Shown here piece after piece: positions 3,097 to 62,924 of a DNA stretch of 64,000 nt (its first letter is position 1; each line of letters opens with the position of its first letter). The translations under genes and the position numbers were made by a program. The stretch lies in assembly GCA_013115145.1 (NCBI GenBank), contig JAAPAO010000029.1, positions 1-64,000 of the forward strand, given 5' to 3'. This stretch comes from Perkinsus chesapeaki ATCC PRA-425. Taxonomy: Eukaryota; Protista; Perkinsozoa. A model generated the notes under the pieces. The model saw nothing but the letters and a program-made list of their open reading frames with translations. It made no database searches and had not been told where the DNA came from.

Positions 3097-3765
3097 TTTA
3101 CCATATACCTTATATAATATCTTTAACCTTTCCTTTATATAATATCTTTAACCTTTCCTTTATATAATATCTTTAACCATTCNNNNNNNNNNNNNNNNNN
3201 NNNNNNNNNNNNNNNNNNNNNNNNNNNNNNNNNNNNNNNNNNNNNNNNNNNNNNNNNNNNNNNNNNNNNNNNNNNNNNNNNNTCCTTTATATAATATCTT
3301 TAACCTTTCCTTTATATAATATCTTTAACCTTTCCTTTATATAATATCTTTAACCATNNNNNNNNNNNNNNNNNNNNNNNNNNNNNNNNNNNNNNNNNNN
3401 NNNNNNNNNNNNNNNNNNNNNNNNNNNNNNNNNNNNNNNNNNNNNNNNNNNNNNNNNATATCTTTAACCTTTCTTTAACCTTTCCTTTATATAATATCTT
3501 TAACCTTTCCTTTATATAATATCTTTAACCTTNNNNNNNNNNNNNNNNNNNNNNNNNNNNNNNNNNNNNNNNNNNNNNNNNNNNNNNNNNNNNNNNNNNN
3601 NNNNNNNNNNNNNNNNNNNNNNNNNNNNNNNTTCCTTTATATAATATCTTTAACCTTTCCTTTATATAATATCTTTAACCTTTCCTTTATATAATATCTT
3701 TAACCATTCCTTTATATAATATCTTTAACCTTTCCTTTATATAATATCTTTAACCTTTCCTTCAT
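3097..3765. repeat. Minisatellite, 25-bp unit (ctttaacctttcctttatataatat), interrupted by three N gaps
   Basis: Direct inspection; ~100-N gaps starting at 3183, 3358 and 3533, so true length is unknown. Confidence 0.9.
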
Positions 3766-9034: not shown

Positions 9035-9680
9035 CGTATATGTAGATATGTAGATATATAGATGTGTAGATATGTAGATATGTACATATATGTAGATATG
9101 TAGATATATAGATATGTAGATATGTACATATATGTAGATATGTAGATATGTACATATATGTAGATATGTAGATATATAGATATGTAGATATGTACATATA
9201 TGTAGATATGTAGATATGTACATATATGTAGATATGTAGATATATAGATATGTAGATATGTACATATATGTAGATANNNNNNNNNNNNNNNNNNNNNNNN
9301 NNNNNNNNNNNNNNNNNNNNNNNNNNNNNNNNNNNNNNNNNNNNNNNNNNNNNNNNNNNNNNNNNNNNNNNATATGTACATATATGTAGATATGTAGATA
9401 TATAGATATGTAGATATGTACATATATGTAGATATGTAGATATGTAGATATATGTAGATATGTAGATATGTAGATATGTAGATATATGTAGATATGTAGA
9501 TATGTAGATATATGTAGATATGTAGATATGTAGATATATAGATATGTAGATATCTAGATATGTAGATATGTAGATATATAGATATATAGATATGTAGATA
9601 TGTAGATATATGTAGATATGTAGATATGTAGATATATAGATATGTAGATATGTAGATATGTAGATATGTAGATATATAGA
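9035..9680. repeat. Compound microsatellite based on 8-bp atatgtag units, with an N gap
   Basis: Direct inspection; explains the spurious YIS/HIY ORFs on the minus strand. Confidence 0.92.
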
Positions 9681-46667: not shown

Positions 46668-49600
46668 ATGTCTGTTCCTTATGGTCGTCCCTTTACCGAT
46701 GACGACATCAAAGCTGTCAGCGAGCTCTGTCCAGCAAGTGAGTTTTCAATTATCTGCTTTATTAACTTATTCACGATAGATGTAGCCTAATTCTTGTTAT
46801 TTTCCACTCCATCTACATTTCGTAAATCCGATTCGGATTCGCGGTTACAAAATTATGACTCCGATTCAGATTATCCGATAAGTCATAATTTTGTAACCGT
46901 TCAATCTTGGACGGTTTCGATGAATGTCATCATTGAGCTCGTTACATCGAAAAAGATCGGCATGCAATTCAATTTTTTACGCAGTTTATTATTCAAATTT
47001 TTGATATAATTTATTTTTTTTCGTTTTCCATGATCTCCGCTATGCCGAATCGGACTTTCAGATAAACCTGTTCGACATTGATTTCTTTATTTTCGATGGC
47101 ATTATTCGCAGTACCACGGGAAAAACTAACAGTCGGATAGCAGCAGCACCCAGAATTACCACTAGGCCTTTTCAGAACTACGACAATTCGTTTCTTGGCT
47201 TCCCTTGTGATGTCCTAGCTGGGGTTCGAACTCGGGTGTTCTACCAGGTTCCAGCTCTGACGTCGAGCTCGCCTTATGGCGTTCCAACGGTAATCGTAAC
47301 ATGGCAGCTAATATGCTATTGAACCAGCAAGGCTCTGCAAGCAACAGTGGATCCGGGTAGGGAAAAATGTGGTCCCCGGGGATTGAACTTGGGCGCTCAG
47401 GTGTTGCTTTGGAGGGCAGTCGTCGGCAGAGAGGGTGCCACAACCAGCAATGGTCTCGGTAGGTTCCGTTGTCAGTTCCTCTACTAATCCAATCCTGCCC
47501 CGACAGGCCGCCGTATTTCCGAAATATCTGTTAATCCCTTGAATGTTCCTCACTGGACCATCGCAGAATGTTAATTACTGCAGAGAGAGGTGTGAAATTC
47601 GGCGGAAATTTTATCGAAATTTTGTCGGCTCAATTTTTTTCCTATCGCACTGGGCTTCAGTTGATTGTATTCTGTTTTTTAGGCACAGCCAGTTCCTCAC
47701 CAACAAGTTGATCGCAGCGCTGAGATAAGATGTTGCTCCTGTCAGCAAGTGATGGACGTGAAGGTTCGGGGCTATCGTAAGTCGAGCTCGAAAGAATCTT
47801 TTGGATTCGTAGTTCTTGGTTTCAGTTGATCAGACTGTGGAAGCGGAAGCGCAGTGTCCTAATTGTCATCAGATGAACCGTTTTGTGCTTCCTGCTGAAA
47901 AAGTGAGCACATGAAACGCTTCGCTCCGCTGTATGGTGGTCTGGTTCAGCCAGCCAAAGTCACCCCGATTCCTGCCGAAGCTACTCCATACAAGCCCTAC
48001 ACGCAGTCGATGCCTGAGCAAGCTTCAGCACCTCAAATGGTGCAGCAGGTTGGTGTGGGATAGAATGGCATTCTGGTCGGGAACAGCGAACAACGGAAAT
48101 GCTCCCCCGATATGGCAACCGCTAGCGGTAACCGAATTCCGAAAACGCGGTATACCGCGAAGTAGGAATTCGATTTACCATTTCGCGGTTTCAACGAAAA
48201 CCATGCCGCGGTTACCTGGTGCATCTCCAGTGATTCACAGGGCGTTCCTTTGGAAGGCCCCACCTCCTGTAGCATTTTATCGCGAACAAGTTAGGGCCTA
48301 ACTGTTAGGCATCGAGACTCGTCACGGGTATGTTTTGGTGGGGCTGAAGTTATAAAAATTCTTACAAAAAACTAACTATACTACCCGATAGAGAAAATTA
48401 CGGGGATTCAGAATATATATGTCACACCGTTTCAAACGTTTTTTTACAAGAAACTTCAATAAAATTACGATCGTACTAATCGAGCGCTGAGAAGTAGACT
48501 TGTCCAACTTTTCTATCTTCAGAACCCTCCGATGGTCCAACAGCAGCAGCAGCAGTTACCTAATGGGGGCGTTACTCCTAGCATGGAGGCTCAAGCTCAG
48601 ATGGGCCTACCGCAGAGCATGAAGATGCAACCGGTTCAGGTTGGAACAGTTGTGCCTACATTAACTGGTAAGGGATCCCATTATGGCAGAGCTTCGGTCA
48701 CAACAGAGTAACGTTGTACTGAATTGCTATATGCGTTGCTGTTTACTTGCCTGTATTAGTTCGCGGTGAGTGCAACACACATTTTTAGTTAGATCAATAC
48801 TGATTACACTGTAGAGGTTTAGACGAAGAAGTTCATTGTATTTGTGCGTCTGCATGCTGCAAATTGATTTTCATCCCATTCCCAGGAATATGTATCCGTT
48901 TAGACCAGAATCGTGGCAAGTCCACAGCATTGGGATTAGTAGGTCAGCTAATGCAAATGATTTTCTTCGATATCTTGAATAAGATTGTTGGTATATTCTG
49001 TATGTTGATTTATTAGGTGTACAAAGAGCATTATTAGTTGGTATTAACTATTATGGGAGTAGTTGTGAATTATCTGGTTGTATACCGGATGTACATAATA
49101 TGAAAAGATTATTAGTTGAAACTTATCATTGGAATCCAAATGATATTAAATTATTAACTGATGATGGAGAAAATGAAATGCCAACACGTAAGCTTATACT
49201 GGATTATTCAACTACTCTTCTATTACAACTTCTCAGGTGCAAATATAATCCGTTATATGCATTGGCTGGTTAAGGATGCCAAGCCTGGTGATATATTCTT
49301 CTTCCATTATTCTGGGCATGGAGCTCAACAGGTAGTTATACTCAATGCCACTTTAGCATTATTAATAATGTATTCAGGAGGATCCTTTACATTTGGAAGA
49401 AGATGGTATGAATGAGACTATCATACCAGTTGATGTAAGCCCGAATAATTTACAACGGAGTTCTTGGCGATAGCTGGCTTAATACCATACATCACGGCCA
49501 CTCACAAAACACTAACACTTCTTCGTATTCTTTTGCATCCTGCCTAGGAGGCTGGTAGATGAAACTTTAAAAGCGTTCGATTTGTGGATCCTACTCAGCA

Positions 49601-52407
49601 GGACCTGATGCGCAACAGCATCATGGTCATCAAGTACCGCTCGTTGTTAGCCACTAGCGAGGCAGTAATACATGATGCCTGCTGTCCTCGGTCTAGAGAT
49701 CCGATAAAACATAAGGATGGTTGTTGCTCGGCGGGGCGGCACCACCGGTGGTATGTGGCTCTTACCCAAAGACGGTCGACAGACACTCTGTGTCACACTC
49801 AGCGTGTATGCTTTTATGCAGCCTCATAAAGCACATGCATTGGTTCGAGAAGTTTTGAAGCAGCTTCAACATTGAAGATTTCAATAGGAGCTTCAATGAA
49901 GCTTCTATAGAGCGACTTCATACTCGACGAGATTCTCGTCATGATAACGACAAGCGTACTAGGCTTGATAATCAATAGGCTTAGCCTGGTATGGCCTATG
50001 ACCGTATTTCCCACTGTGAAATTCACACCAGAGAGTTTTTTATAACTCTTTTGCATATCATCGTCGCAGACGCTCTTCTTGCGGTCATCAAACCTGTGCA
50101 TGAAATCTTAATCGAAGTTTTTGGAGCGGCATTGCTCCACTGAAACGGCCACCATCAGGTTAATGAATGTAGCCTAGACAACAACATCAGCGAGACATTC
50201 AATGCCGCATTAACACTGGGGCAGAATGGAGGGCGCCGTATGATTTCTGGGACTGAGGTCTACAACTTCTTGATCACTCATTGTTGCACAATTGACGCAC
50301 CCTTCTGACGAAACTTGAGACATGGCTTGGAAGGAAACCTCGACTTGGTTTCTTCGTAACGTAGGCTCCGTTACGAAGCTATTTGAGTTTCTCGTTATGT
50401 GCTACTATTATACCGATCTTTTCATAGCTCTTCTGAAGTTCACCAATGATGAGGATGATACTTTACCGCAAAGTCTGGATACAGAGTCAATACTTTACCG
50501 CGATTGTCCAGGGCCAACAATCTTTCAGGTTGAAAGCCTAACATGTGACCTAACGTGCTGTTTTTTGAAAACCACTAGAACTAAAGCACGGTCGTCTGAC
50601 GGAACATGAAACCTGAAAAAAAAGAATAATTGGCTTGAAATAGGGAATCCGCAAACGCAGGCTTCGTTGCGGAGTTTTGACAAATATCGTTTGTCCGGTT
50701 GCGTTAATCTAAAACTGTATATGTTTCTCGGCGAGAGCTCTCGAGAAGGCATTCAGTTGCCCTGAAGGAGATGCTAAGTTGGGGCGAAAATGTCGAGAAT
50801 GACCGATGTGGATGACTGCTTTTCGTACAGGTTCAAAAGTCGGGTCAAATCACTGATGACGTTATACATCAGACTTTAGTGGACCCATTGCCAAGTGGGG
50901 CGAGATTGACTAGTGTTATGGATTGCTGTCACTCGGGAACAGGTGACACCGGGAGAATGGAAGTCCCGATGTGAGATATATAGAAGTTTATAACGAGTGA
51001 CTGCGTGTGATTGGTTGCTGCCAGTTCATTCCTTGTTGTGATATCGTATACGGTATAACGCAAGTACTGATCACATAATATTACCTGCATCCACCCGTGT
51101 TGTACTATTCATCCGCCTTTTGTAACTGAGCGCTGAATTTCCTCTCTAAATCGCCAGGTTATTAATGGTGCAAGTCTTACAATGTAAGACCTGTTAGAAT
51201 TTCCTCGAAGTACCTCCTCCTCCCCAACACATGTAGGTCAGCATAGGCATACATTCAAATAGTGGAATTCACTAAGATCCCCAAACCTCTTCCCGAACAC
51301 CCAGTTTCGGACTTGTCTGTGGTATATCAGGTATGGACTTGCCATGGGCGTGGCTGACCGGCAGAGGTTGGAAGGAAGACGTGAATCCATGGCTCTCTAA
51401 AGGAGATGTAAAGTATCCTTGTCTTGGAGCTTTGCAATGCTGCTGTGAACTAGGTTCAGTTGTTCAGTGGATGTGATGACAGTCAGACTTCAGCTGATGC
51501 CTCAACTGGGAATCAAAGAGGTGGAGCTATGACCACTGCATTTTGTAAGTTATTTATGAAGAACGGTAGCATTTGTGTTCGCTGGTGTATGGCATGAACT
51601 CTATGCTAAGACTTCTCAACGTTCGTTTCCACTGGAAACTTTCCGGCAAGTATAAATCCTATAAATACTTCCTCTCGCATTTAGTAAATGCCATTTACTA
51701 TAAGTGGTTTACTGGTAGTCGAGGCTTGTGTTGTATGGTATATAACATATGTCTCTACTACCAGTAAATTGCTAGTAAGATTGAGAGATTGCCCTAGGTC
51801 GTAACCCTACGATGATAATGACTAAGTCGTAGAATAGCCTTCTATCATAATTTCTGTAATGAAGTTCCCGCGAATATTCTTCACGTATGTTTCTTCAGGT
51901 AACGCAATCAGAAGAAATCCTCAGGTCACCTACACCGCCCTTATAGAGAATCTAGATATCGAAATGAAGAGGGAGCATATGTCTCAGCGTCCCCAATTGT
52001 CATCATCTCAAGTCTTCCCCATAGATAGGTCGGAAGGTGGAGGCTCAGTCGCTCGTGATCTGTTCCTCCTCAGACCGTTCAATCTCACTGATATTCTTCC
52101 CAATCAGAATCAGTACGTCGGTCGCATAGTTCACAAGAAGTTCGCGCCGCACCCCAACGCCAATAAAAACCGCGCCCTTAATGCGCTCCTGGCGGGGACT
52201 GCCGGGTTCGCTGGAGGGATGCTCCTAGGCGATGCAATCGGGCAAAACCACCGAAGGCCACCGGTTGTTGTTGGGCCCGGCAGAAGACCGGTTGTCGTCG
52301 AGCCTCGAAGAAGACCTGTTGTCGTCGGCCCAAGGAGGCCTGGGCCGGTGTTTGTAGCTGGCCCTAGAGGGCCATTCGGCGGGAAGGGCAAGGGATTCAG
52401 ATGGTGA
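46668..52407 (+). CDS. MCA1: Metacaspase copy 1: CUE/UBA-like + zinc ribbon + Q/P-rich prodomain + p20/p10 + Gly-zipper/Pro-Arg tail
   Basis: MSVPYGRPFTDDDIKAVSELCPA|SSSSDVELALWRSNGNRNMAANMLL; CCSC..CPNC; [50 protein letters not shown]. Confidence 0.9.
47211..47235 (-). other. tRNA 3'-end-like fragment upstream of acceptor 47247
   Basis: Reverse complement CCGAG-TTCGAAC-CCCAG-CTAGGAC-A. Confidence 0.5.
47363..47392 (-). other. tRNA 3'-end-like fragment with T5 run filling the 44-bp intron 47357-47400
   Basis: Reverse complement CCAAG-TTCAATC-CCCGG-GGACCAC-A-TTTTT. Confidence 0.55.
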
Positions 52408-52985
52408 TTTATTATATTTTGTTCGGTATTTGGCTTCCTAAAGTGGAAGCTAGTTACTACATCCATTTTGGATATTGAGGTCCTTCTGTAACTGCACCAC
52501 CTGCTCAGCAGCATGTTATGCTGCGGTACCGTAATTCTTAAAACGATTTATCGATTTCGATTTCCATTCAAACTGGTGTGAAGTTGAGTGTTCTGAGTAG
52601 CGACTCTTTTACACGCTCTTTTACTTTAACTTTACAGATTTTGAGCTTCTACTTTCGATGGCAGCACTTTTCTGAGCGTTTTACCCAGATACAGATTTGT
52701 TCGCTTATCAAGTCCACTTCGCATACTGATGCATTTTAGTCTTATGTGGTCTTAGGCGACGCAAGTGAATAAATGAGTTGGCTTTGTTGTTTCGATGCTG
52801 AAGTTACATTGAGAGTTGATCACTATCACTGGCCCAGTGCTATAGACGATCTCGTCTTAGAGGGCCTGTAGGGTCTTTTCATCGTAAACTTGTGACTGTC
52901 AATTTAGGTATGGGTGCCTTACAAGTATATTATAGTTATTTACTACTTATAATTTCTTACACTATTTAGTAGTATATTATTTATT

Positions 52986-55900
52986 ATGTCCATCACACCG
53001 CCCATTCCACAGAGCGATATCGATGAAGTTAGATTTCTAAGCCCGTCTAGTAAGAACATACTCGTACTTAGAATCATTGATTACACATTTCCGTGGGCGA
53101 TTCACCGTTCGATGTACCTTCATTATCATCGAGTGTAGAAGTAACATAGGAAAATGTAACTGTATGCTACGGTTACATTCACCCAACTAATACACTGACC
53201 ATATGTTAAAACCAATAAATTTAAAACTTCAAGTGAAAACTCTAAAAAATGAATGTATGAGGCCCGTTGAAAGTTGAACCGTCTTTAGATGACGGGTACT
53301 GTATCAGTACGGCATTTCAGTAAAGTGCGTCTTGTGGCTTTCAAAACAAGATAAACTCGTTAGCCAACTTCTCACCAGTTCATGCTGAAAGTATTTTTAT
53401 CCTCTTAGATAGCAACGGTCTAAAGTCCACATTATTGCTACACCTATTCGTAATGCAGTTGGAATTTCCCTGAGTCAGGTTCTGATAATGAGATAGAGGC
53501 CGCACTTTATAAATACCACGGAAATAAGGACTTGGCCGTTAATGAATTGCTCAGCAAGGCGGAGGACCAGAAGGTATCGAAACGTTCGATGCAGCCGGAA
53601 CAGATGTAAGTAATACGGATTCGGCGGTACGGATTTTGGCTTATGTGACAGGTACACCCCCTCGGTCAATGGTACATATGGAGCTCCTAACCAATCAAAT
53701 GTAACGTGGGCCTCGGCTGAAAACCGGTTTTTTCTGTGGGAAGTTTGTCACTCGGCGAAAATGAAAATAAAGGAGGTTGGAGTTCCCCCTCTACGACTGG
53801 ACTCTCGAGGCGCAAGAAGGGTGAATCTAAAATACTTTCGTGGCTGCGCTGATCGCTCGAAACCTTCTATCTTATCTTATTATCTTGTCTTAGTCACAAT
53901 CAGTACGAGTTCAAGTCGAATGCGGGATGTGTCATGAAGTTTTGATTATTCAAGTGGAAGCGACACGTAAGTTCGGGAAAGTTGAGCTGGCGACCATCTA
54001 GCCTCACGGAGATATGCTCCTCTGATGGAAAGAATTTCCTAATGCGGAGGAGATGCTTCGCGAATTTGGCTAGGAAATAGGTAGAGGAAGCATCACACGC
54101 ACTCCCAAGGGGTCTAGGATGTCATGCGTTAGGGAAGCATCCAATATGGTGCCCTTGCAGGGAAGACCCGAAGCACTCATAATGGATTCTCGCGATGAGT
54201 GTTTAATTGATAGAATGGCAAACTTGATTAGTGTAGATTGAGTTATCTGTTGGTTGGGAAGCCTCGAGGGTATCAAACATCTCAGCAAAAGCTGTCTTGA
54301 GAATTCCTTGTGTACAAAGTCATTTCGTGCTCACCATGGCGGAAGCCTTGATCTCTGCACTGCTGCCAAAGGGATAATTTCGCCTGCCGTAGAGGGAGCA
54401 GTGTTTTCGTCGAATATCGCTGTTATTTGTTGCATTCCTCGGATCGTGCCTCTGTCTTTCAGGTGGTATGCCTCTTCGTGCCCGTGCTACATGTCCACAC
54501 TGTCAGCAGCTCAATGAGTTTGATATTCCTGCGTCACAGCAGCAGCAACAGGTAACCATACCGACTCGATATTACCGAGCGCCTCGTTGCGAGCCACAGC
54601 TAAATAATGGATCTCAGGTCTCGCCAGCTCCCGTGGCCCAGCAAGCTCAGCCTCAAGCGTTTGCTCCAAGCGTTGCGTATCCGGATAATCAGGTAAGGCG
54701 GTCTGTGTTTCATTTGCAAAGGTCCGAAGCTTCTGAAATATATATGTCGAACTTCAAAGTTCGAAGTTGTATAAGTCTTCATTTCGGCAAAATGATGTGT
54801 TAATTAGATTTCCGCCTTGTGTACATACAAGATACAGTTTATCTGATTAAGAAGTTGACTAATTTAGTTAGCAAACGACAGACACAGTCTTATTGCGGAT
54901 GATAGGTCTCCAGTCTATAGAAGCGGTAGGAGTGCTCTGTGTGTTTTGTCAGGTAAACTCTGGTGCGCAAGATCAACCAAGTATGCAGACACAGGCGCAG
55001 TATGGTATGCCAGCCACTATACAAGTCCAACAAGCTACTGTAGCGGTCCCTCCTCCCACACTTAGCGGTGAGTGCAGTCTGTGTCGGAGGTGTATTCAAT
55101 GTGATGGTTTGTTGTCATACATGAAGTGGACTACATTCCCGGGCTTATACAGTAGAAGTCCGTATTAGACATAGCAGTTTGGAATTAGCACAGTAGTTTT
55201 TCACACTCATTTAGCTCTAGTAAGAATCTGTCTCGCTGAGTGGTAGTTGGCGAAGACCCATTTGTGGTGGGTTACGTTCTGTAGATTCACGGGGCTTTAG
55301 ATTTGGTACGGGTTCCTATTCGCCTCAGTCTGCAATAATGCGCGAGTGCACGAATGCGCGCTATGCTTCGGTAGTGAACGGTGTTGTGATTTATTAGGTG
55401 TACAAAGAGCATTATTAGTTGGTATTAACTATTATGGGAGTAGTTGTGAATTATCTGGTTGTATACCGGATGTGCATAATATGAAAAGATTATTAGTTGA
55501 AACTTATCATTGGAATCCAAATGATATTAAATTATTAACTGATGATGGAGAAAATGAAATGGCAACACGTAAGCTTATACTGGATTATTCAACTACTCTT
55601 CTATTACAACTTCTCAGGTGCAAATATAATCCGTTATATGCATTGGCTGGTTAAGGATGCCAAGCCTGGTGATATATTCTTCTTCCATTATTCTGGCCAT
55701 GGAGCTCAACAGGTAATTATACTCAATACCACTTTTTTCATTATTAATCATGTTTTCAGGAGGATCCTTTACATTTAGAAGAAGATGGTATGAATGAGAC
55801 TATCATACCAGTTGATGTAAGCAGGTGAATGTAGCTTGAAAAATCTATGAACAGATTCTAGACATTCTAGCAGCATAATGTCAGAAGTCTCCTGTGTAAA

Positions 55901-58511
55901 TGCTAGGCCATGTCATGGACCATGCATCATTATAGCTTTTTGGTAACTCTCTCTGCTGCATGCCACGACTTACGATAATTCACGGCTTCGAAAAGACTTC
56001 GTATGGGTGACCAGCCAGCATTCAGAGGAGCGCAACTCCGCTGAGTGGCAGCTTTCTTACGAGCTACAACTCGTAGCCTACAAGCAGACTAATTAAGGTT
56101 CATCATACATTGTAAAGTGCACTGCTTGTAGTACAACATTCCAGCGCCACCGATATATTGTACGCGGCTTAGTAAGCAGGGCTATAGCTAATCTTAGGCC
56201 AAGATGAGTGATTCTCGAGATCAGATCGTAGATCTTGAAGATCTATCTAAGATCCTTGGATGACTGAATTGGGTATGCCGGAATTTGCGGTATGCCGAGG
56301 CACAGACCTTCCAGTTACATCTGCGACAGCACCCAGGGCTTTATCACTGCTGTCAAACACGTCTATGAAGGGTCACATCAACACAATTCGCTGCCATTGC
56401 CACACCATAGAAGCGGCAAAAAGCCCACATACAATGTAAACGTTTAACACCTGTCTTAGCAGACAATGATGTTTTATCATTAATGAGATCTGAACGGATT
56501 AGTTCGTACAATCCCCCGGTACTGACCTGGTAAAACGTACTGAGTGGATTACGTCATAAGTAAACGACAATGGCTTGTCTCAAGTGCAAGTTCTACGGCT
56601 TCTAATCCTGCGAACGATCCAGCTGCCGGACACCAAGTCTGAAAGGAGAGCAGTTCGTTCTAGTGACGTTGCAGGCTGGGCCGCAAGTAAAAATTATTGA
56701 TTGAATCACATGAAGGTACATGGACTATGGGTCTTTTTTCTACCTCAATGTGTCGAGTAATCAATCTATAGTAATGCGATTGAGTGTATTTCTGTACCGA
56801 CATGAAGATTTCGACATGTGGCCTCAACGAAAACCCAATAAATTTGGAGCACGTTTTCGAGCCTGTTTTGGCCAAGAATTGCACTTCATCAGGTTAAGAA
56901 AGCTGGCCAAATAACAGATGATGAGATATTTCAGAGTTTAGTAGTACCGCTTCCCAGCGGTGTACGTCTTACAAGCGTCATGGATTGCTGCCATTCAGGA
57001 ACAGGTTTGTTCGCCACAGCTCCTGTCGATTTCTCACTCTAACACGCTGTATTGTTTACCGCATTCCGCGTCAGCATCAGTTGAACTTGTCTTTTTTGTA
57101 GGTATGGATTTGCCCTGGAAATGGGTGGAGCATCGAGGCTGGAAGGAAGACGTTAATCCATGGCATTCAACGGGAGATGTAAGGCATGTGTGAGGAGTAG
57201 TTCCGTAGACCTCGATTTAGTACGCTATTTGCCCGGTACATTATTCGGGATGCAATGGCCATCAGTCGCTGATATTATCATAATAATATTATTAGCCATT
57301 TAGCTTGCAGTCTGAAAGTTGCAAAATATTACTCCTATGGTGCACCAGGCTTTATGTGATAGGTCCAGCTGTTCAGTGGTTGTGATGATGCCCAGACTTC
57401 AGCAGATTCCTCAGCGGGGCCGATTAGTGGTGGAGCAATGACTACTGCATTTTGTAAGATGCAGTTCCTCTCAGTTAGGGAAGTCCACTCGGAATGAGCT
57501 CGTACGTTTATACTGTAGGCGTCCGCGAGAAGACTTAAAAGTCTTGTGAAATTTCGTCAGACTATTCACGGTTTGTTGCACTTCCCTTCACTTGAGACGG
57601 TATACATTATTTTCATAAATTCTGTGCCTTGATGAAAGTTGTGCAGTTTGTCGCTCCTGGACCAGGAATCCTGGTTTCCTATATAGGTCTATATTAGACT
57701 TCCGGTTCCATTCTTTTAGAGGGCTCGCGTGAGCTAGGATTCTACTCCATTTTGTCATTTCGGAGTTAGAGTAATCCGTGATACCTTGGCGGAAACTGAG
57801 CTTTGCACTTGTGACAGTTTTGCTGATATTTCCCGGAAATAATTTCCCGTAATGATGCAGAATCGACATCACATAGCTGCTATGTCATAGCACCGTTCTC
57901 CAGGTAACGCAATTCGCGCTCGCCCGCAAATTTCATACGTTGATCTCATCGATAGACTGAATGATGAGATGCGTAGGAAGCATATGTCACAGAGGCCTCA
58001 GTTATCAAGCTCACAGGTGTTCCCTTTGGACAGGTAAGATTCCCTCGTGATTGGGCGGATGAACTTGAAGGGAAAACTCTGCAGTATTGATTGGATAACC
58101 CGTTCTTAGTGGTTGGTTTTTCCCGCTCAGCACCAGTCACTGGCTCTCCCTTCATTCGACGTTCACCCAACTTGGAGAGACGTCTGACTTTGACTTTGTC
58201 TGTTTCCGCTCAGACCGTTTAATCTCACAGATATCCTGCCCAACCAGAACAAGCATATCGGCCGAACTGTGCGCCAAAAATTTAAGGCCCGTCCAGATCC
58301 GAAGAAAAATGATTTCCTGAAGAAGATGATGGTGGCCGGCGGAGTTGGACTGGTCGGCGGCATGCTCCTCGGAGCGGCCACGGACGATTCTCCTCGCCCG
58401 ATCGTTTTCGCGCCGAGACCGCCAGCTCTGTTTAGCGGACCGCGAATCGTTTTGGGCGGAGGGGGCCCGTTTAGAAGGGGACCATTTGGAAAGGGAAATG
58501 GAATCTGGTAG
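52986..58511 (+). CDS. MCA1: Metacaspase copy 2, same architecture
   Basis: [21 protein letters not shown]|[25 protein letters not shown]; ECGMC..TCPHC; FFHYSGHG; VMDCCHSGT; tail [23 protein letters not shown]. Confidence 0.9.
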
Positions 58512-59093
58512 AAAGATTCCCCCACTGAAAATCTTTACAGTGCGATTCTGGAGTTAGTGTGACTCGCACTGTGCGAAATGGTGAGTATCATTCAGTGTGC
58601 TTTATTATAGTTAGTTAGTAGTAGTAAGATTCCTCGCATTGATGTGGATATCTTTACCAGCGAATTACTATCGTGAAAAGCTTCGTTTTGTGTTTTGCTA
58701 TTGCGAAAAAAACCTTCACAGTGCGTATGAGAATCTTTCTAATGCGTTGTGATATACCGATTTTAGTCATATACAGTGTATGATTGTTTACTGAGGTAAT
58801 ATAAGATATTCTGAATTTACTGGACGTGTGGTTTGAACCAGGAACCTTTCGATTACGCAGATGTTCCTTCTCTCTGTTCCGCTATTTTGATGTTGTGTTG
58901 GCTGGGATTTGCCGAACGATCATGTTTTTATTACTGAGGAGGATTTACTTGTTGTTACCGTCTCTTCGTGTGTCGCCGCAGGAGCTGATCAAGGGTCGTG
59001 GGAACACGTTCTACAGATCTACAAACAGAAGAGAAGTTTTCTTAGAAAATCGTAATTAGTATACCAGGCATCAATAAATAGTTTATTTTAATA

Positions 59094-62000
59094 ATGGTAA
59101 CCAAGCCGTTCTCACCTGATGCCATTTCACAGATAAGGTTCCTGTGCCCCAATAGTAAGTTTTCTATTGCCTTTCACACTGGACATCTAGTTGTCTTTGT
59201 GTAATTTGTCCCCCTCCAGGTTCTGATAATGAGATTGAAGCAGCTTTATATAAATACAACGGCGACCAGAATATGGCTGTAAATGAGTTGTTGAATCAAC
59301 AGGAACAGAGACGATCGAACAGCCGCCATCAAAGTGGAAGTCGAAATTAGTAGGTCCATCCGCCTCGTTGGCACCCCACAATGCGCGCTGTCTATTTTTT
59401 ATGATTTTATATATGAACTCTAATGCATGTTAAAAATTTGAATTAATGCCTTTAAAATGTTGCCTATAGATATTGGTGTCACAAAGGTCAATCCGCTTTA
59501 CCCATCGACAAACTCCGAGCCGTGCATCTGTGTCGTTGTTAGTTACCAGCAGGCCCCTCAAGTCGCTACCGGAAACAGCGCACCATTACAGGCTACAGTG
59601 GTGAGCTTCAAAATCCGCAAATCGGCGTGACCTGTGTTCTAGGTGCAACCGAGAGAAGTGACGAGAACGGCTCAGGTGCAGTGTGGATCTTGCCACCAAG
59701 TTTTGACGGTCCAGATGACAGCGATGCGTAAGAAGCTCTGCGTCTCTTTCCCGTAGGCCCCCCATATAATTTAGGTGACCAATCTGTGAAGGCTCAGGCG
59801 ACATGTCCGCATTGCCAGATGCTGAATGAGTTCATGATTCCCCCTGAGACGGTAAACTTTCGCCGAACGAAATCGAGTCGAACTATTATGGCCTATTTGG
59901 AGACACCGGAGACTATGGTGTAGAGTCACTAGAATTTCGTGCATAAATTGCTGGCGGATCGCGAACTGCGAGTCGCAATTTTCGTGGCATTTGTCAAATG
60001 TCTTCTTTTATGCGGTTTTCCTGGCTTATGATTTTAAAAACTGAGTTGATTTCATGTGTTCACTGGTTAAACCAGTTTGGTTTTATCCAGTGCCGCCGTT
60101 TGTATGCTTTCATCCTTCCAAATTGCGCGGACATCTGAATCCGTATCTCACTGTGTTGCAGTTGATTACGCTTACATCAGGTGCCAACGGCAACAGCGAT
60201 GCCTATGAGCGGCGGCGGTGGCCTGCCGCAGCAAGCTCCTCCACCGAGTATGCAAAGTCAGGCAATGTATGGGCTGCCGAGCACGATGCAAATGCAACAA
60301 ACATCACAAGTCGGAATGCCAACACCGTCTCTTACTGGTACAGAGGGCAAAGTCACGCGCCAGGAAATTGTGTGTTTTAGGTGTACAGAGAGCTCTATTG
60401 ATTGGTATTAATTATTACAACACACCGGCGCAGCTTTCGGGATGCATACCTGATGTAGGTTGGGAAAAATCTTCATAGTGCGAAAAGATTCGTGGTTCTC
60501 AAAGGATACGTGTGTGGCAATGTATGAAAGTCTCTTGGAAATGAATTGTATATGGCTTGCCGACAGCAAGTTGGCTCTTTTCGGGCGCGAATGCGAACAT
60601 CCGCATGCACCACGTTGGTAATTACACCATATCGAACTGAATTGTCAGCTCTAATTTTCTTATCGGAAGATAGCGGCTTGCAGCGGCCTCTGCTGAATCG
60701 AGCAGCACTCGTGCTATTAAGGACTCTTGTTGTTTCTTTCTAGTGTATCCTGCACCGTATTTCGTATTATGATAATTTGTGTGTTTAACAGGCTCACAAT
60801 ATGTTCCGATTGCTTACTGAGACTTATCGGTGGAATCCTGGTGATATAAGAATGATGACAGATGATGGAAGGGCTGAGATGCCAACTAGTAGGTTCGGAT
60901 TGGTTGGTCACGAATTTGATTTCCATCGGACTTTTGCAGCTTGTTAAGCTTGGTGTAAGTCTTGCAAATGGCGCGGTAGTTTTTGTCGATAGCGTTATCT
61001 CCTCAAATTTCCGAAGAACTTTGTTTGCAGCCCATCGCATTTAATTGCTTGCAGGAGCTAACATCATAGCGGCATTGCATTGGCTGGTGAGGGATGCCAA
61101 GCCAGGTGATGTATTCTTCTTCCATTATTCTGGTCATGGATCCCAACAAGTAATAACCTATCTACCTTCGCTCCGCTAGGATTCTATCCTTCCAGACCGA
61201 TCCTTATGGCTTGGAGGAGGATGGAATGAATGAGACGATCTTACCGTGTGATGTAAGTGATAACGCTTAAAGAATCATATTGTCTCTGGATGAAAATTTC
61301 CGGATCCGTATAAGCATGTGCGCGTGTCACATAGTAAATTGACGAACTCATCGGCATGCAGTGGCCCACTGCTAGTGGGATATCGCTATGTCATTTGACT
61401 TATCTCATTTACTGCTAGAGTTTACATAGTTTACGCAGAAGAGCGGAGTCTTTATGCATTTTCGTATTTCACTCAGGTGCGTCAAGCAGGCATGATTTCA
61501 GACGATGAAATATTTGCTATCTTGGTTGCACCTTTACCGAGTGGAGTCAGGCTGACAAGTGTTATGGACTGCTGTCATTCCGGAACAGGTACAGAACACT
61601 GGTGGCTTTTTGTTGCGTATGGTAGTTTTCAAAAGTAAGTTTCACTCTAATTCCTGGAACCTGCCAAAACTCACCGATTATTTTCTTGGGATACATGAGG
61701 GTCAGGTTTGGGGGCAGCACACAAAATTATCATGTTTCTGGGAAAAGCAGGTGTTTGACCGTCAAACTTTGAGAAGAATGTTTTATCGTGGGTAGTTTGA
61801 CTCTGTTCAATCAGGCATGGATTTACCCTGGCGCTGGATTGAGAGAAGAGGCTGGAAAGAAGAGACGAATCCATGGCATTCACTCGGCGATGTGAGTTCG
61901 AAGTATCTTTGTACTCTGAGCTTCCTATTCGTATCACGCATTCATTGCTGCACATACCATCATTTCGTTACGCACGTGTTGTCCATTGTACACAGTCCAT

Positions 62001-62924
62001 ATGCCTTTCCAATAGGTTCAACTATTCAGTGGTTGTGATGATGCTGGTACATCAGCCGATGCCTCTGCAGGCAGCATGAGGGGAGGCGCAATGACCACGG
62101 CATTTTGTAAGCCTCATGGTCGTTGTTCTTCCTTTTGTCCTGGAGGGGCAAATTTCCCTCAGAAGGCATCCGGGCATGGGCTACCCATGATGGGGTTTTT
62201 GAAATTCCCAGATACGCCCTCGACTCAAGGTCGTGTGTTGGTATTTTACTCGCGTCGAAATTGCGAGAATACACAGGATAACTTCTTATTCTTCTATGCA
62301 ATAGATTACTGACATCTGTGGTTTATTGATCGACCCTCAGGTAACTCTATTCGGGCTAGCCCATACATAACTTATATCGATCTAATTCACCGTCTAAATG
62401 ATGAGATGCGGAGGCATAGGATGGGACAGCGCCCGCAGCTGTCTAGCACGCAGGTCTTCCCAGTTACCAGGTGAGTTGCAATCCAACTTCTAGTTGTAGT
62501 TCAATGTGCGCCGCCGGCAACAGCCAGCCGCAGTGCCACTGTGTGAAATTTCCATTCTGGGGTAAATTCCCTGTTCGTTTTTACTCACTGAGTTTGTATT
62601 CTGGAAATAGTTGAACTAGTTCCAGAATACAAACTCAGTCTAGTTCCGTAGACTCTTCCGTCATCCCTTCCTTGCGGAGGCATGGCGCAAGTTAGAAACT
62701 GAAGAAATCGAGTTCCGATTTTTATTATTGCTGATGTTTTTGCGATCAGGCCGTTCAATCTCACCGACATCCTGCCGAATCAGAATCAGTATATCGGCAG
62801 AATCGTTCGTAAACGATTCAAGCCCCGCAAGAACAAGAAGAAGATGCAAGGACTTGACGGCCTATTGCTACCACTTGCTGGAGGCATGCTAGCTGGTGCA
62901 TTGCTAGGCTCGATATTTGACTAG
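59094..62924 (+). CDS. MCA1: Metacaspase copy 3, same architecture with a shorter tail
   Basis: MVTKPFSPDAISQIRFLCPN|..[24 protein letters not shown]; QCGSC..TCPHC; FFHYSGHG; VMDCCHSGT; ends PLAGGMLAGALLGSIFD*. Confidence 0.9.

Follow-up and report, generated by a model that had tools for sequence, protein, structure and literature searches.

Three metacaspase genes lying in tandem in the genome of Perkinsus chesapeaki ATCC PRA-425, a member of a genus of oyster and clam parasites, are most probably paralogues that present the Perkinsus version of an architecture common in their clade, in which a CUE domain precedes the protease; we put the probability of this reading at roughly 0.78. The window analysed here comprises positions 1 to 64,000 of contig JAAPAO010000029.1, and the genes occupy 46668-62924 of its + strand, from the ATG of gene 1 to the stop codon of gene 3. 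To judge from the available sequences, the CUE-metacaspase layout occurs widely in this clade, with examples among dinoflagellate-like transcripts, in the gregarine Digyalum and in Pyramimonas, and the fusion itself is already known. Particular to Perkinsus are the divergence of the CUE domain, its pairing with a zinc ribbon and the tandem triplet.

Gene models and protease domain

The host contig is eukaryotic and intron-rich, with about 45% G+C, and the same series of short coding pieces appears three times among the + strand open frames of 46668-62924. They make up three tandem, intron-rich type I metacaspase genes of 572, 513 and 491 amino acids, in which every intron is GT-AG and the frames are open. 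Gene 2 (52986-58511, + strand, 14 exons, with linker exons less certain) was assembled by hand from GT-AG sites into one open frame, and this model was reproduced exactly by a purpose-written protein-to-genome spliced aligner. The aligner, guided by database orthologues, was used to model gene 1 (46668-52407, + strand, 15 exons) and gene 3 (59094-62924, + strand, 15 exons, aligned to P0151 of P. olseni). Single exons, or the database orthologues P0151, P0157 and P0002, served as search queries, and joined models were compared in scripts. Each protein has the same domain order: a three-helix domain, a low-complexity linker, a zinc ribbon, a Q/P/M-rich linker, p20-p10 and a C-terminal module. 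The Q/P-rich linkers described in an initial annotation of this DNA are borne out, reading Q/P/M-rich in the models. Many introns are only 42-49 nucleotides long (e.g. 55569-55617, 55713-55759 and 47357-47400), others 0.3-1.4 kb.

Single exons of all three genes match the Peptidase_C14 family above its cut-off (25.8-28.8 bits versus 21.4), and full-length orthologues match it with E-values of 1e-30 to 1e-35. The p20/p10 exons span 49017-52028 in gene 1 (histidine in 49237-49331, cysteine in 50831-50942), 55398-58033 in gene 2 (55618-55712 and 56893-57004) and 60381-62470 in gene 3 (61055-61149 and 61477-61588). The motifs of the catalytic histidine (HYSGHG) and cysteine (DCCHSG) are intact in all three models, so that the intact SGHG and DCCHSG noted initially can be read directly. 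Prodomains measure 165-220 amino acids, and in the orthologues the Peptidase_C14 match of about 235 amino acids forms one stretch, p20 being directly followed by p10. By family score, catalytic pair and the combination of a prodomain with contiguous p20-p10, the triplet is assigned on sequence to the type I metacaspases (Peptidase_C14, MEROPS C14B). The tandem triplet of such metacaspases proposed by the initial annotation is confirmed by three complete GT-AG models, with Peptidase_C14 above cut-off on exons of each. In a family scan of the 41.7 Mb assembly, Peptidase_C14 was detected at these three genes only, a count that is a lower bound.

Genes 1 and 2 share a 436-bp block with 97.5% identity (49006-49440 and 55387-55822), covering three exons and two short introns; elsewhere the two genes align in exons only, at 70-80%. 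Its sequence suggests that gene conversion recently acted on the part of p20 that bears the histidine.

A diverged CUE domain at the N-terminus

Each gene opens with two small exons, of 61-70 and 95-130 nucleotides, which encode a three-helix unit. Exon 1 contributes the CUE-like helix 1 and a short motif with proline: E-L-C-P at its end in gene 1 (46668-46737), F-L-S-P in gene 2 (52986-53049) and F-L-C-P in gene 3 (59094-59154). Exon 2 contributes helices 2-3 and the di-leucine, read as M-L-L in gene 1 (47248-47356), which is the most diverged copy, and as E-L-L at the end in gene 2 (53479-53573) and gene 3 (59220-59349). This di-leucine of helix 3 is invariant in the alignment of Perkinsus N-termini. 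The peptide quoted in the initial annotation is exactly the spliced product of exons 1-2 of gene 2.

Profile comparison and structure prediction support the reading of the N-terminal unit as a diverged CUE domain of UBA-like fold, homologous to true CUE domains. In hhalign, the Perkinsus N-termini match a CUE alignment of related metacaspases with 96.5% probability and an E-value of 7e-10 over 42 columns. The target alignment was built from seven CUE/UBA-like segments of five related metacaspases, in three of which (P0158, P0115 and P0028) Pfam CUE/UBA is above the cut-off. A profile search of the sequences in PDB ranks the EDD UBA, the Tollip CUE and a UBA-like domain first. The AlphaFold2 model, computed for residues 1-55 of the gene 3 orthologue from P. 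olseni (an estimate by eye puts its identity to gene 3 over residues 1-52 at about 80%), has three helices, at 8-17, 23-32 and 37-53, and a predicted local distance difference test score (pLDDT) of 84.6. The first twelve Foldseek matches to this model are of UBA fold and the top ten are annotated as UBA or CUE; top matches are the EDD UBA, Tollip CUE, CUEDC1 CUE and Ddi1 UBA, with template modelling scores up to 0.82 and a root-mean-square deviation of 0.7-0.9 Å to the EDD UBA.

The Pfam matches of this region are all below threshold, and all fall on UBA-like families (HBS1_N, GIP1_N, UBA_HOIP and CUE). Exon 2 of gene 2 matches CUE with an E-value of 0.028 and HBS1_N with 0.006, exon 2 of gene 3 matches HBS1_N with 0.0015 as well as GIP1_N and UBA_HOIP, and exon 2 of gene 1 alone has no Pfam match. 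The N-termini of the orthologues match only HBS1_N, GIP1_N and UBA_HOIP, with E-values of 0.01-0.3. The UBA/CUE reading of the initial annotation is thus upheld by hhalign and by the three-helix UBA/CUE fold that AlphaFold2 and Foldseek return for the P. olseni orthologue; of the profile checks, the hhalign and PDB-sequence matches to CUE/UBA came out positive, while Pfam CUE/UBA stayed below cut-off. A search for words shared with the first 60 residues of P0151 returned only the P. marinus orthologue, a result that shows only the lack of shared exact words within the length band.

Codons of the CUE region differ between genes 2 and 3 at a proportion of 0.98 of synonymous (pS) and 0.22 of non-synonymous (pN) sites. 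Because 98% of synonymous sites are different and only 22% of non-synonymous ones, exons 1-2 are evidently both coding and constrained.

Alternative explanations

That exons 1-2 and the protease exons form a single gene is, on sequence, highly probable. Their junctions in all three genes are GT-AG and phase-compatible, with uninterrupted frames; independent gene predictions in P. marinus, P. olseni and P. chesapeaki fuse the CUE-like exons to the protease; and relatives known from transcript assemblies have CUE and Peptidase_C14 in one open reading frame (ORF). Further downstream, an MMETSP transcript product, P0001 (79% identical to gene 2 over 161 aligned residues), joins the ribbon exon through the linker exons to the first p20 exon. 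Several points weigh against our interpretation and are taken together here. The joining of exons 1-2 to the ribbon exons rests on gene prediction and homology, the frame of exon 2 closes 0-11 codons past the proposed donor in each gene, and the deposited P. chesapeaki model P0172 begins at ATG 59457, inside the proposed intron 2, without exons 1-2. Because the exon 2 frame closes so soon after the donor, a separate small ORF is formally possible: exons 1-2 would then be a small gene for a stand-alone CUE-like protein of about 60 amino acids, and the metacaspases would start at a downstream ATG, as P0172 does. This explanation would need three co-duplications, each 300-500 bp upstream and on the same strand, and it is opposed by the phase-compatible junctions in triplicate, the concordant predictions in three species and the transcript-derived relatives; we consider it improbable. 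The remaining adverse points concern the domain itself. No Perkinsus copy reaches the Pfam cut-offs for CUE (PF02845) or UBA, the best value being 14.5 bits versus 21.1 (CUE, exon 2 of gene 2 alone), and the Met-Phe-Pro position of CUE domains is occupied by Leu-Cys-Pro in genes 1 and 3 and by Leu-Ser-Pro in gene 2, with proline kept and phenylalanine lost.

In solved CUE complexes the phenylalanine of this MFP motif contacts the Ile44 patch of ubiquitin. Its loss in all three paralogues, as well as in the orthologues from P. olseni and P. marinus, favours a unit that is UBA-like but no longer reads ubiquitin. Like the UBA-like folds of HBS1, NAC and EF-Ts, such a unit would serve for protein-protein contacts of a general kind or for dimerisation, or it would be an autoinhibitory element of the prodomain. 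The strongest Pfam matches, which are to HBS1_N and GIP1_N and not to CUE, point the same way, as do the EF-Ts and NAC UBA-like domains in the Foldseek list. On the other hand, the unit retains its di-leucine and the Ala/Gly positions of the core, it is homologous to the canonical CUE domains that sister metacaspases have in this place, and the UBA ranking first among its fold matches was solved with ubiquitin bound. Such a non-reading module is a serious possibility, if not the one we favour, and from sequence and model we give ubiquitin binding by the CUE-like domain about even odds. A predicted complex of the CUE-like domain with the genome's own ubiquitin monomer (L001:1495-1722:-) had a score of 0.26 (mark 0.34) and is not used as evidence either way. 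It is scarcely credible that the UBA/CUE likeness is mere chance and the exons encode a short amphipathic helical leader: single Pfam and PDB E-values are indeed not significant (0.0015-0.3), but the profile-profile E-value of 7e-10, the confident fold model, the top structural matches, exclusively to UBA/CUE, and strong purifying selection all oppose it. The interpretation as a diverged CUE domain, encoded by the first exons of the metacaspase genes, is the one followed below.

Ubiquitin itself is encoded in this genome by a polyubiquitin gene (G000:C664:37064-38647, - strand; locus L001) with at least seven head-to-tail canonical units of 76 amino acids and no introns within the units read.

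Zinc ribbon

In all three genes a C-x2-C-x21-CP-x-C zinc ribbon is split across two exons. It is found at 47683-47902 in gene 1 (exons 47683-47776 and 47826-47902), at 53894-54551 in gene 2 (exons 53894-53966 and 54463-54551) and at 59643-59851 in gene 3 (exons 59643-59727 and 59775-59851). The C-x2-C-x~20-C-x2-C element of the initial annotation corresponds to this four-Cys ribbon, the exact spacing being x21 in all three. Six columns of the C-x2-C...C-P-x-C-x3-N signature are invariant in 26 family sequences, and C11, C14, C36 and C39 are invariant. The AlphaFold2 model of the ribbon has four strands and a pLDDT of 92.7, and its closest fold is a ribbon of the Tim15 type. Pfam gives only sub-threshold matches to generic zinc ribbons, with Zn_ribbon_4 in 21 of the 26 ribbon sequences.

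The consensus of zf-LSD1, the finger of plant LSD1, has a short C-x2-C...C-x2-C spacing. No zf-LSD1 (PF06943) match was found in three full-length orthologues at E-values up to 1, and the family is absent from the 25 families listed for P0151:90-140 and from the 25 commonest across the 26 ribbons. An LSD1-type finger, for which the initial annotation had suggested a profile check, was rejected on the lack of a zf-LSD1 match and on the spacing of 21 residues. Sequence and model together characterise the predicted ribbon as a family-specific, generic four-strand zinc ribbon and not an LSD1 finger.

P0173, a gene 1-like protein of P. marinus, has two tandem zinc ribbons and begins inside CUE helix 3. 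It represents either a real duplication of the ribbon or a model in which two adjacent genes were merged.

C-terminal module

All three proteins end with a conserved 13-letter motif, a basic stretch and a Gly-rich hydrophobic segment, encoded in the last exon. In gene 1 (52074-52407) these are followed by an Arg/Pro/Val repeat tail, in gene 2 (58214-58511) by a Pro/Gly tail, and in gene 3 (62750-62924) the basic stretch is Lys-rich. The exon scan found no Pfam model for this module. Its motif is present in 63 of 314 proteins, and 61 of these 63 have the Gly-rich hydrophobic segment, mostly at the very C-terminus. The segment of gene 3 ends one residue before the stop codon (19-residue Kyte-Doolittle mean of 1.96); 55 residues follow it in gene 1 and 42 in gene 2. 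A tail anchor would be a single hydrophobic segment no more than about 30 residues from the C-terminus. Gly-rich and only moderately hydrophobic, the segment may on sequence be such an anchor.

Orthologues, duplication history and deposited models

When 1.84 billion representatives were searched with the first p20 exon, Perkinsus proteins came out on top. Gene 1 agrees at every aligned residue (100% identity) with P0177, a deposited protein of P. chesapeaki, save for the exon 49017-49187 skipped in the latter. For gene 3 the matches are P0172 of P. chesapeaki and, at 92% identity, P0151 (KAF4665274.1) of P. olseni, and gene 2 shares 77-78% identity with P. olseni P0157 and P0175. The mutual identity of the paralogues is 59-64%, below the identity of each to its P. 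olseni counterpart. Because the paralogues are less alike than each of them is to this counterpart, the triplication predates the species split; by sequence comparison the duplications are placed before the separation of P. chesapeaki, P. olseni and P. marinus. The same first two exons are present at the locus of the P. marinus gene 3 orthologue. No further metacaspase exons lie within 10 kb on either side of that orthologue, so that the spacing of the triplet is not kept there, and a tight tandem arrangement was rejected for P. marinus.

The publicly available models P0177, P0172 and P0157 look faulty. P0177 omits the first p20 exon (49017-49187), and P0172 also misreads a part of p20/p10. 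In P0157 the P. olseni protein is fused to an unrelated neighbour of 195 amino acids; the P0153-like gene that is fused there to the gene 2 orthologue is missing from this window, and the fusion was taken as an annotation artefact.

Elsewhere in the window, four runs of about 95-100 N, either gaps or withheld sequence, occur at 3183-3631 and 9277-9371. The first 12 kb have a low G+C content (31-40%) and a strongly positive GC skew.

Possible function and significance

The CUE-like unit could, with odds that are about even, dock the protease onto ubiquitin, onto ubiquitinated proteins or onto the ubiquitinated form of the protease itself. The docked enzyme would be Arg/Lys-specific and probably Ca2+-dependent, and may be kept at a membrane by its hydrophobic C-terminus.

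A wider proposal, which we regard as doubtful, is that the prodomain of metacaspases in the myzozoan/algal clade is an exchangeable reader slot that goes together with a conserved hydrophobic anchor at the C-terminus. The Perkinsus triplet would then be subfunctionalised, its CUE having drifted to an altered ubiquitin or ubiquitin-like ligand. If this were true, CUE/UBA domains and RanBP2-type fingers would read ubiquitin, PBZ and WWE domains poly(ADP-ribose), and EF-hands and C2 domains Ca2+ or membrane. The enzymes would be membrane-tethered proteases, or deubiquitinase-like as reported for the yeast MCA1 core, aimed at substrates marked by these modifications.

Our results correct and complete the models of three genes, the only metacaspase loci that were detected in this Perkinsus genome, and assign N-termini left blank by standard domain scans to diverged CUE domains. 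They also place Perkinsus in a wider alveolate and algal group of metacaspases with prodomains of the ubiquitin-reader type. The Perkinsus proteins present a compact natural test of whether a CUE prodomain steers a metacaspase to ubiquitinated material, an idea that is not itself new.

Comparison with known systems

Pfam recognises canonical CUE and/or UBA domains ahead of p20 in several of the nearest non-Perkinsus metacaspases. Among the 120 homologues of P0151 that match best, 13 combine CUE with Peptidase_C14 in their precomputed domain assignments, and in all eight relatives that were rescanned CUE lies N-terminal of p20. The initial annotation had suggested a survey of alveolate proteomes for UBA with Peptidase_C14; among the nearest homologues the combination of CUE with Peptidase_C14 is common. 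A CUE domain is also reported, together with C2 and proline-rich elements, in the Toxoplasma gondii metacaspase TgMCA (TGGT1_206490) on the basis of SMART/CD predictions (Li et al. 2016, PMC4717298). The initial annotation, which did not recall the fusion as described, was right on the fold and wrong on novelty, and its view of the function is unproven.

TgMCA is, like the Perkinsus proteins, an alveolate type I metacaspase with CUE in the N-terminal region ahead of a p20 with intact His/Cys (PMC4717298). Compared by description, it differs in having an extra C2 domain, no reported zinc ribbon and a CUE recognised by standard domain tools. The gregarine protein P0277 likewise has C2, CUE and Peptidase_C14 by Pfam, and P0308 of Pyramimonas is named 'CUE domain-containing protein' in UniRef; both a gregarine and Pyramimonas are represented among the 13 homologues. 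In the CUE-metacaspases of marine protists (P0184, P0190, P0221, P0224, P0228 and P0308), CUE stands at or near the extreme N-terminus and is followed by linkers and p20-p10, as in Perkinsus. Unlike in Perkinsus, their CUE has a canonical MFP-type motif and reaches the Pfam cut-off, and many of them add EF-hands, a second UBA or WW. P0028 shares with Perkinsus the same zinc ribbon between CUE and p20, and P0158, P0184, P0186, P0190 and P0198, among the 50 family members listed, share the C-terminal motif and the hydrophobic end.

Other sister metacaspases (e.g. P0007, P0178, P0197 and P0220) have other modules at the same position of the prodomain. Of the 120 best homologues, 13 have PBZ fingers, which bind poly(ADP-ribose), 9 have EF-hands and 8 have RanBP2-type fingers, besides C2 and WW; one of the 75 prodomains scanned has a WWE match. 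Full-text searches found no paper describing a fusion of metacaspase with PBZ.

For yeast MCA1 a functional tie between metacaspase and ubiquitin is on record: its catalytic core is reported to cleave ubiquitin chains, and its prodomain to drive stress condensates (PMC11567894). Yeast Mca1/Yca1 and the Perkinsus proteins are both type I metacaspases with a prodomain, that of yeast directing the enzyme to protein aggregates. The yeast prodomain is, however, Q/N/P-rich and has neither CUE nor zinc ribbon, and the yeast protein lacks a hydrophobic C-terminal tail. Plant type I metacaspases such as AtMC1 have a four-Cys zinc-binding element and a Pro/Gln-rich region ahead of p20-p10. In contrast to the LSD1 finger of AtMC1, the Perkinsus element is distinguished by its x21 spacing, its CP-x-C-x3-N signature and a predicted four-strand ribbon similar to that of Tim15.

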